A DNA stretch of 64,000 nt. It comes from Setoptus koraiensis (Eukaryota > Animalia > Arthropoda). Position numbers and translations under genes: made by a program. The stretch lies in the NCBI GenBank assembly GCA_048013815.1, contig CM106586.1:7068001-7132000 (forward strand), written 5' to 3'. Below are positions 23,770 to 26,700 of this stretch, in pieces (within the stretch, counting starts at the first letter, position 1; each line of letters starts with the position of its first letter). The notes under the pieces were generated by a model. It made no database searches. It was not told where the DNA came from and worked only from the letters and a program-made list of their open reading frames with translations.

Positions 23770-26700
23770 TCAGTAATTTGTTTCTTGTTCCACCCAACCG
23801 CCTGGATGTTTCCTAATCAAATATTTCCTTGTTTCATCATAACACATAATCATCACTGCAAATGGTAGTGGGGGCAACCACCAGTTGAATCTGCATAAGC
23901 AAGGAGATGAGGGGTATAGATTGATTTTTATCAAGTTAATTGGCGATTGCATTCAAAATGATCAAAGTGAACAAATGGAGTGAATGGAGTTGATGTTTGA
24001 AAACTCACTTTATGGGGTACATGTTCAACGCGGTGTCCATGCCGGGGCAATAGCTGAGGAAGGCGGCCAGGGCCGTCTCGAAAACCAGGGCAAAGTTCAT
24101 AACTTGATTAGTCATGCCTTGTTGCAATATTGAATTTGTTCTAGTTTTGCTGACTATTAGCTCGGCCCATTGAACAACAACAACAGATATGAAGAACGCC
24201 GTCTGGCATGTATATTCTAGCTTTTTTCGTTGTATATAAGTCCACTCTTGACCATAGGAATCCTTAAAATCGTTGACCGCCTTAGATTCCCACGATTCTC
24301 TAATGCCTATTAGATCGCCCAAAAAGAAGCCATTTTCGCACATGATAATAGTATAAGTAAAGAATCCGGCCGACGCTTGCATCATGCCTGTTTGACCGTA
24401 ACTGAGCGACAATAGTCGCTGATTGACAAGTCGATCATTGACGGGATCTCTGGGCTTTCTTTTCATGATGTCGCTTTCGGGATGCTCGTAGGCTAATGAA
24501 ATGGCTGGCACCATGTCTGTGCCCAAATCGATCCACAATATTGTGACCGTGCCCAGCGCCAATGGTATACCAAATGCTATAAATGCTAAAAATGGTGTTA
24601 TTTCTGGTATGTTGCTCGTCAATGTGTAAGCAATTGATTTTTTGAGATTGTCAAAAATGAGCCGGCCCTCTTCGACGCCAATCACAATAGAGGCAAAATT
24701 GTCGTCCAATAATATCAAATCGGCCGCTTGTTTACTAACATCACTACCCGATATGCCCATGGCAATACCAATGTCGGCCTTTTTCAGGGCAGGCGAATCG
24801 TTGACACCGTCGCCCGTGACCGCAACCACGGCGCCGGCCCGCTGACAGCCCTCAACAATGATGAGCTTCTGTTGTGGCGAGGTGCGCGCAAACACAATTT
24901 CCGGATGTGTCGCCAATATTATGTCCAATTGTTCACTAGACATATCCCTCAGCTCTTGGCCGTGTATAACGGCCGCTTTGGCCTCGCTAGGGTCCACCTC
25001 CTCGATGGGTTTGTTCAGCCTGCTGGCAATGTCCTCCACTGTTTCGGTGCCCTCCGATATAATGCCCACAGATTTGGCAATGGCCTTTGCGGTAATGGGA
25101 TGATCGCCTGTCACCATTATTACCTTTATGCCTGCGGAGCGACATTTTGCCACCGCGTCGGGCACCGCCGCCCTGGGCGGGTCAATCATGCTTATTAGGC
25201 CAATAAAGCGCATATTGTCCAATGGAAAATTTGGTTTAGGCTCGGAAACGAATGGGAAACCCTTTGGAAATTGTTCTGTTCTTAGTTCGCAATCACAAAA
25301 ACCAATGACACGCTCGCCTAAGCCGCCCAATTGCAAATAGGCCGCATTAAACAGATCCTTGCGCTCCTCGTCTAACGGCTCCTCAATGCCATTGACCAGA
25401 ATGGTGGAGCAACGCTCCAGAATGCGCTCCGGCGCGCCCTTCATACACACCAAATAGGAGTAGCTGTTGTTAATGCCGGAAGTGGGATCAATGTTGCCAT
25501 TTGTTGAGCCGTCGTTGTTGCTTGTGTTGTCGTGCACCGTTACATGGTATTTGTTTGTTGAATTGAATGGTATTTCGCATATCTTAGGATATTTGTGCCT
25601 GTAATCAGTTACATGACAAATGGTTAATTCCATACATTTCAGAATGGCGGATTCTGACGCGTCGCCGGAAGTGTCGCGTTTTAGCACGGGCAAATGCTCT
25701 TGGCCGGGTTTAAATTCGGCGCGCGAACACAAACAACAAATGCGCGCCAAACATTTCCACGTTTGGGCGCTACGATCATATTGGGTGCCCGATTGATCCT
25801 CGGTAGTGTCGGCCTCTATGATCTGATTGTCGAACCACATATGGGCCACAGTCATACGATTCTGGGTCAGTGTGCCCGTCTTGTCAGAGCAAATGGTCGA
25901 TGTGGACCCCAACGTCTCAACGGCCTCCAAATTTTTCACTAGACAATTTTTGGCCGCCATCCGTTTGGCCGTCAGCGTCAAACAAACGGTCACGGTGGCT
26001 ATGAGGCCCTCGGGCACATTGGCCACAATAATGCCAATGAGGAAGACAACTGCCTCTAACCAGAAATAGCCCAACAACAGTGCAATAATGAAGAATGTCG
26101 TGCCCAAAAAGCAGGCACCGCCAGTGATGATGTGAATAAAGTGCTGAATTTCTCTAGCTATGGGCGCCTCGCCCATCTCTAGGCCGGCGGCCAGGCCCGC
26201 AATGCGGCCCATAACGGTGCGGTCGCCCGTACAAATGACAATGCCCCGGCCCGTGCCCTCAACGCAATTTGTTGAGAAGAAGGCCAAATTTCTCGTCTCA
26301 AGCGGATTCTCGTTGGTCAGCTCGGTTGTTCTGATCTGTGGCTCGGCCTCGCCCGTCAACGACGAATTGTCCACCTTGAATTGGTGCGCCTCTATGACGC
26401 GCAAATCCGCCGGTATTCTGTCGCCGGCCTCCACCTCAACCAAATCGCCTATGACCACCTCCTCGGCGGGCACTGTGTCCGTTTCGCCGTCGCGAATCAC
26501 GCGCGCCTGTTGCGGCACCATCTTCTTGAACGACTCCATGATCTTGCTGGATTTACGCTCTTGAAAGTAGGCAAAACAACCCGTGACAAACACCACGACG
26601 GCCAACACAATGCCCAAATATAAATCATTTAGTTTTGCGTCCTCCGACGTAAATCTCTGTATGGAATAGGCAACAACGCACAATATCGCTCCGATCCACA

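Follow-up and report, generated by a model that had tools for sequence, protein, structure and literature searches.

The 64-kb stretch of DNA analysed here (the window) carries an intact copy of paralog A of the eriophyoid-mite Na+/K+-ATPase alpha subunit. We conclude, with a probability of roughly 0.7, that the glycoside-resistance-like residues in its M1–M2 extracellular loop are a derived state, fixed across the superfamily, and most likely a by-product of a wider remodelling of the pump, not an adaptation to host plants. Adaptation to plant and toad toxins by resistance changes at residues 111–122 is a textbook example of convergence; here, two of the strongest of these changes have become fixed throughout a superfamily that shows no visible exposure to these toxins.

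The Na+/K+-ATPase alpha gene is intact and consists of four minus-strand coding exons (3090-nt CDS, 1029 codons; Table 1), separated by introns of 168, 252 and 118 nt that all have GT..AG ends. The exon model was obtained by tblastn with the closest database proteins combined with inspection of the junctions. The third exon, contained in a 966-aa ORF (24005..26905), encodes M1–M10 with the H1–H2 (M1–M2) loop, as well as the A, N and P domains. The N-termini of the database proteins P0002, P0003 and P0127 read MTIGEVGL or MTIGDVGL. The same four pieces occur in one uninterrupted frame in an ENA assembly contig (L003), with the junctions exactly as predicted. This orthologue (positions 131–3331 of L003) is devoid of the window's three introns, and stems either from a transcript or from a species in which they were lost; the gene caller read through the TAA/TAG stop of this contig, translating it as Q. 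Long (TG)n/(CA)n microsatellites appear in the ORF listing at about 27450–28400, directly upstream of the first ATPase exon, and an (AT)n run lies at about 26900–26935 within the second intron. The neighbouring genes in the window are ordinary animal genes, and the 64 kb yielded no beta-subunit gene. The probability that the gene is an artefact, whether a pseudogene, an assembly error or contaminating sequence, is next to negligible. The frame of 1029 codons is open and its splice sites are canonical, a protein from an independent Logan assembly (P0001) is 99% identical, 88–98% of the gene's sampled words are present in independent runs, the neighbours are of animal type and the gene is under strong purifying selection (see below). 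We found no evidence for an artefact and regard this explanation as effectively refuted already.

Table 1. Coding exons of the Na+/K+-ATPase alpha gene and residues discussed in the text, with positions in the window.
Feature	Position	Strand	Basis
Coding exon 1 (ATG; MTIGEVGL), donor GTAAGT	27374..27397	-	in-frame; matches N-termini of P0002, P0003, P0127
Coding exon 2, acceptor CAG, donor GTGAGT	27140..27205	-	tblastn with P0002 residues 9-30, 91% identity
Coding exon 3, 2879 nt (DDH... to ...MYPIK), acceptor CAG, donor GTGAGT	24009..26887	-	ORF, structure scores
Coding exon 4 (FNWWLPP... to WVEQETNY, stop TGA), acceptor CAG	23770..23890	-	tblastn with C-termini of P0002, P0003, P0127
H1-H2 (M1-M2) extracellular loop, residues 111-122	26624..26659	-	translation; numbering from HMMER alignment
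Asp/Asn swap N121 D122 (canonical D121 N122), codons AAT GAT	26624..26629	-	codon reading
R112, codon AGA	26654..26656	-	alignment; window species and P0001 only
D926E	24161-24163		alignment
C802W	24533-24535		alignment
R972N	24023-24025		alignment

The encoded protein scored 1467–1525 bits against structures of Na,K alpha1–4 (the top score, 1525 bits, being to alpha1 structures), compared to about 1250 bits against H,K-ATPases and about 362 bits against SERCA. Its position in the tree is inside the arachnid Na/K clade, and among named proteins it comes closest to the alpha subunit of Fragariocoptes setiger (92% identity). Together, these structure scores, the nesting in the arachnid clade and the identity to F. 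setiger bear out the initial annotation, which had taken the gene for a Na+/K+-ATPase of a probable mite. The core motifs are present (DKTGT at query position q341, TGDGVND at q697 and PEGL at q298). Among the ion-site residues checked (N324, E327, Y771, T772/T774, S775, N776, E779, D804, D808, Q923 and D926), all are canonical except for D926E, T774 having been read directly from its sequence context. The retention of S775, which is a Lys in the H/K-ATPase, argues for a Na/K and against an H/K pump. Q111, T797, F783, F786, R880, G319 and A323 are likewise canonical. Two other features of the protein were observed. The dephosphorylation motif of the A domain (26345–26347) reads TGEA instead of TGES, as in 14 of the 19 sequences of the orthologous clade (clade A, window included), and the Ser of TGES is kept in both paralog-B sequences and in 113 of 114 other pumps. 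The N domain (about 25450–25530, minus strand) contains 16 extra residues, rich in Asn, Ser and Gly, relative to vertebrate alpha1 structures.

Residues were numbered from an ungapped HMMER alignment to the pig and sheep alpha1 structures, in which the query index plus 28 gives the mature alpha1 residue; against mature pig alpha1 this alignment is gap-free over the first 450 residues at the same offset. The alignment of the loop is unambiguous because its length equals the canonical length. On the minus strand, the codons from 26659 to 26624 are CAG AGA TTT ACG TCG GAG GAC GCA AAA CTA AAT GAT, and translation of 26612–26671 gives Q111 R112 F113 T114 S115 E116 D117 A118 K119 L120 N121 D122, flanked by AYSI before and LYLG after. 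Translation and structure alignment agree that the loop had been read exactly in the initial annotation, with Q111 kept and P118A, D121N and N122D substituted. D121N and N122D each correspond to one G/A transition at the first codon position.

Sequence affinity identifies the source organism as an eriophyoid (gall or rust) mite. F. setiger belongs to the Phytoptidae, and Aceria tosichella, which falls in a cluster at 87% identity, belongs to the Eriophyidae; both families are Eriophyoidea. Clade A comprises 19 sequences (the window, P0001–P0004 and 14 members of the Aceria cluster) retrieved from NCBI, UniRef, JGI, ENA and Logan. The pattern FTS[DE][DE]AKLND is present in all 19, and the loop varies in this clade only at position 112 (A, V or R) and between D and E at 116 and 117. 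The arginine at 112, which lies beside Q111 and near D122, occurs only in the window species and in P0001 (99% identical); in other eriophyoids this residue is A or V.

To place the loop among chelicerate pumps, as the initial annotation had proposed, we aligned it with 114 pumps from ticks, mesostigmatid and sarcoptiform mites, spiders, scorpions, horseshoe crabs, insects, crustaceans and a few outgroups, a sample without Tetranychidae (spider mites), Nematalycidae and early-branching eriophyoids. The combination N121 and D122 was confined to clade A (19/19 vs 0/114), both D121 and N122 being conserved in 114/114 of the non-eriophyoid pumps. The companion change P118A was rejected as evidence: it is non-diagnostic because Ala occupies position 118 in 23 of the 114 unrelated pumps, and is common in spiders and scorpions. 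A non-exhaustive word search with the loop region in a collection of 5.8 billion proteins returned no non-eriophyoid carrier of N121/D122. The remaining matches, unrelated ones such as amphibian ATP12A, were to flanking words, and all of these read DN.

Two trees were computed, a quick one under LG+G4 and a careful one under LG+C20 PMSF, the latter built without the window row. Both recovered clade A (support 100/99, stem 0.19) as sister to a clade B (support 100/100) made up of P0006, from another eriophyoid, and the F. setiger "alpha-1" P0007. The stem of A+B is very long (0.53 changes per site) and stands beside the sarcoptiform mites. On these trees, the A/B duplication is specific to eriophyoids and the whole pump evolved fast on their stem. 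The paralog-B loop follows the pattern STxENVLPD[N/D], with STxENVLPDN in P0006 and KVSTQENVLPDD in P0007. P0006 keeps Q111, D121 and N122. P0007 carries Q111K and N122D, a charged 111/122 pair reminiscent of the rodent R111/D122. Since D121 is kept in both clade-B sequences, D121N arose on the A stem. The ancestral state of A+B at residue 122 is ambiguous with two B sequences (n=2), DN and DD being equally parsimonious: N122D arose twice, or once with a later reversal, and both histories take three steps. A search with the paralog-B loop, intended to settle this ancestry, returned only the two B sequences already known. Judging from these distributions, the loop was most likely gained after the duplication and before the split of the sampled Phytoptidae and Eriophyidae. 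The initial annotation had also raised the alternative that the loop is ancestral within a divergent clade of paralogs in all mites; this nearly describes the situation in Eriophyoidea, and does not extend to mites at large.

We then asked how the loop compares with the rest of the protein. Outside eriophyoids, 566 alignment columns are at least 98% conserved, and 31 of these are changed and fixed in clade A. As many as 25 of the 31 changes are common to paralog B. At four of the 31 sites both paralog-B sequences retain the conserved residue, and D121N is one of these four changes, whereas N122D is found in clade A and in one paralog-B sequence. The presence of D121N among the few A-specific hits at ultra-conserved sites argues that the change at 121/122 goes beyond the general drift of the lineage. 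If D121N and N122D compensate each other, these two changes may perhaps represent one evolutionary event. Selection was assessed against another eriophyoid sequence (L001), with which 823 of 923 aligned residues are identical. Among these identical residues 460 are encoded by different codons (56%), a level at which synonymous sites are near saturation. N121 and D122 are encoded by AAC GAC in L001, so that both loop codons differ synonymously from those of the window and the two residues have been maintained through synonymous turnover. This codon comparison indicates that the gene is under strong purifying selection.

N121 and D122 occupy two of the sites where mutagenesis lowers glycoside affinity, a set that includes residues 111, 121, 122, 786 and 797; the primary mutagenesis was reportedly carried out by Price, Rice and Lingrel (1989–1990). 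The description of N122D, D121N and P118A as published resistance-type changes agrees with the literature. D121N is reported to lower cardenolide sensitivity about 100-fold and is found in an orthopteran ATPalpha1A copy (10.1101/542811), as well as in milkweed bugs and Ceratophrys (10.1101/2021.11.29.470343; the journal versions of this and a companion paper are marked as retracted, and they are used for occurrence data only). N122D belongs to the rodent R111/D122 pair, in which an interaction between the two side chains restricts access to the pocket (PMC11193536). P118A recurs in cardenolide-feeding insects, as does I315V, and resistance-type states also exist in species without glycoside intake (10.1101/114694). 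Both D121N and N122D have been studied alone or in combination with Q111R, in pumps of vertebrates or insects, and what they do varies with the background (10.1101/2021.11.29.470343). Our literature search on eriophyoid pumps and ouabain found nothing relevant. The steroid pocket has residues 121 and 122 at its mouth, and each of the two changes lowers ouabain affinity elsewhere, which makes a reduced affinity plausible. By analogy with these systems, the odds lean slightly towards a mite pump that would be less glycoside-sensitive than the canonical arthropod pump. With an Asp and an Asn still present at the top of M2 after the swap, the binding geometry might be partly preserved.

The scenario that we favour for these observations begins with a duplication on the stem of the eriophyoids, along which the whole pump evolved unusually fast. 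After the duplication, the A copy exchanged the otherwise invariant D121-N122 for N121-D122 and changed residues 113, 118, 119 and 120 as well, and purifying selection has maintained the paralog-A loop from then on. The swap is most likely a by-product of lineage-specific remodelling, possibly as a mutually compensating pair.

Four other readings of the loop were weighed against this scenario. An adaptation specific to the window species was ruled out, the loop being identical in the 19 orthologues. This identity across two families marks the loop as a state of the superfamily and not as a host-driven adaptation of one species. An older adaptation, in which an ancestral eriophyoid encountered plant steroidal toxins, fixed D121N and N122D (along with P118A and I315V) and passed them on to its descendants, is very improbable in our view. 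It would account for the match of A118, N121, D122 and V315 to recurrent changes of glycoside-adapted insects and vertebrates, for residues 121 and 122 being two of the very few A-specific hits at ultra-conserved sites, and it would suit the biology of eriophyoids, which are obligate plant-cell feeders. However, the loop does not track exposure to cardiotonic steroids: the same state is fixed in species on grasses such as wheat and on strawberry, with no host association visible. Wheat and strawberry are not known to contain cardenolides. Moreover, A118 is common in spiders and scorpions, I315V is a conservative change that one paralog-B sequence shares, resistance-type changes are known in species that do not eat glycosides, and the branch is very long, with its 31 changes at ultra-conserved sites lying mostly far from the glycoside pocket. 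The link to host-plant chemistry implied in the initial annotation is therefore not upheld, the loop being fixed in 19/19 orthologues, including those of A. tosichella and F. setiger.

A division of labour between the two copies, with a resistant A in exposed tissues and a sensitive B (canonical D121/N122 in P0006) elsewhere, has precedents in milkweed bugs and some beetles, and an eriophyoid-specific duplication does exist, whose two copies are not alike at 121/122 in one species or more. We nevertheless consider it quite improbable, given that B is not consistently sensitive-looking (Q111K and N122D in F. setiger) and that A, being less diverged, shorter-branched and present in far more of the samples (19 sequences vs 2), looks more like the housekeeping pump. 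The swap could also be functionally silent, leaving sensitivity and transport unchanged and the loop as a neutral marker of the lineage. Such silence would fit the conserved composition of the Asp/Asn pair and the canonical state of all the deep-pocket contacts (Q111, T797, F783, F786, R880, G319 and A323). It is harder to reconcile with the invariance of D121 and N122 in the 114 other pumps, which argues that these positions matter, with the published single substitutions at either site, which alter ouabain affinity, and with work in flies, where altering residue 122 carries a cost unless permissive partner changes are present. On this evidence we rate a silent swap as rather unlikely. A derived loop, fixed in the superfamily through remodelling of the pump, would thus remain the reading that we prefer.

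The remodelling itself is not limited to the loop. Both eriophyoid paralogs carry D926E, C802W (two residues before D804), R972N and an altered C-terminal tail, at residues that are invariant in the 114 pumps. The C-terminus is ETNY in A (encoded in the fourth exon) or ETYF in B, in place of ETYY. These changes are concentrated in the region of Na+ site III and of the C-terminal switch, and may represent more interesting biology than the glycoside loop. It is unlikely that a plant-feeding superfamily possesses a glycoside-insensitive main pump through a mutually compensating D121N/N122D swap, as part of a wider re-engineering of the pump. Insensitivity would in this way be reached without the severe pleiotropic cost that single changes at residue 122 entail. 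The wider re-engineering would include D926E, C802W, R972N and the altered C-terminal tyrosines near Na+ site III, and eriophyoids would constitute a natural experiment in how far a Na+/K+-ATPase can be rebuilt.

Taken alone, the loop is a new, undescribed lineage-level instance of well-known variation and of modest interest. The residues given in the initial annotation are confirmed; the adaptive link to the host is unsupported and P118A carries no weight. The superfamily-wide fixation of the two changes is a counter-example to reading adaptation from sequence alone: a screen for glycoside resistance on the basis of sequence would mistake all gall and rust mites for specialists. The natural N121/D122 double change also offers material for the study of epistasis and compensation. 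We see the main value of this case in the counter-example, and in the pointer that it provides to an unusually remodelled family of pumps.

Canonical chelicerate alpha subunits (ticks, Varroa, Tyrophagus, Dermatophagoides, spiders, scorpions and Limulus) are 72–75% identical to the window's protein over the whole third exon and have the domain architecture, ion-site residues and loop length in common with it. However, their loops all end in ...[PD]DNLYLG, whereas that of the eriophyoid copy ends in ...KLNDLYLG and is accompanied by C802W, D926E, R972N and the ETNY tail. Paralog B, the sister clade, agrees with A in 25 of the 31 changes at ultra-conserved sites, C802W and D926E included, but keeps D121, with N122 in one species and D in the other. 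Like rodent ATP1A1 (Q111R and N122D), the mite pump has an Asp122 at the top of M2, a residue at the border of the M1–M2 loop that controls steroid access. Unlike rodents, the mite keeps Q111 and has N121, which rodents do not, and an Arg is adjacent, at 112, in the window species only; since Q111 is kept, the R111–D122 interaction of the rodent type cannot form as such. D121N is common to the mite, the milkweed-bug ATPalpha1 copies, the orthopteran ATPalpha1A and Ceratophrys ATP1A1. These other systems belong to eaters of glycoside plants or toads, and the changed gene is often one of several duplicated copies, whereas in the mite D121N is fixed superfamily-wide, has no visible link to glycoside exposure and is paired with N122D.
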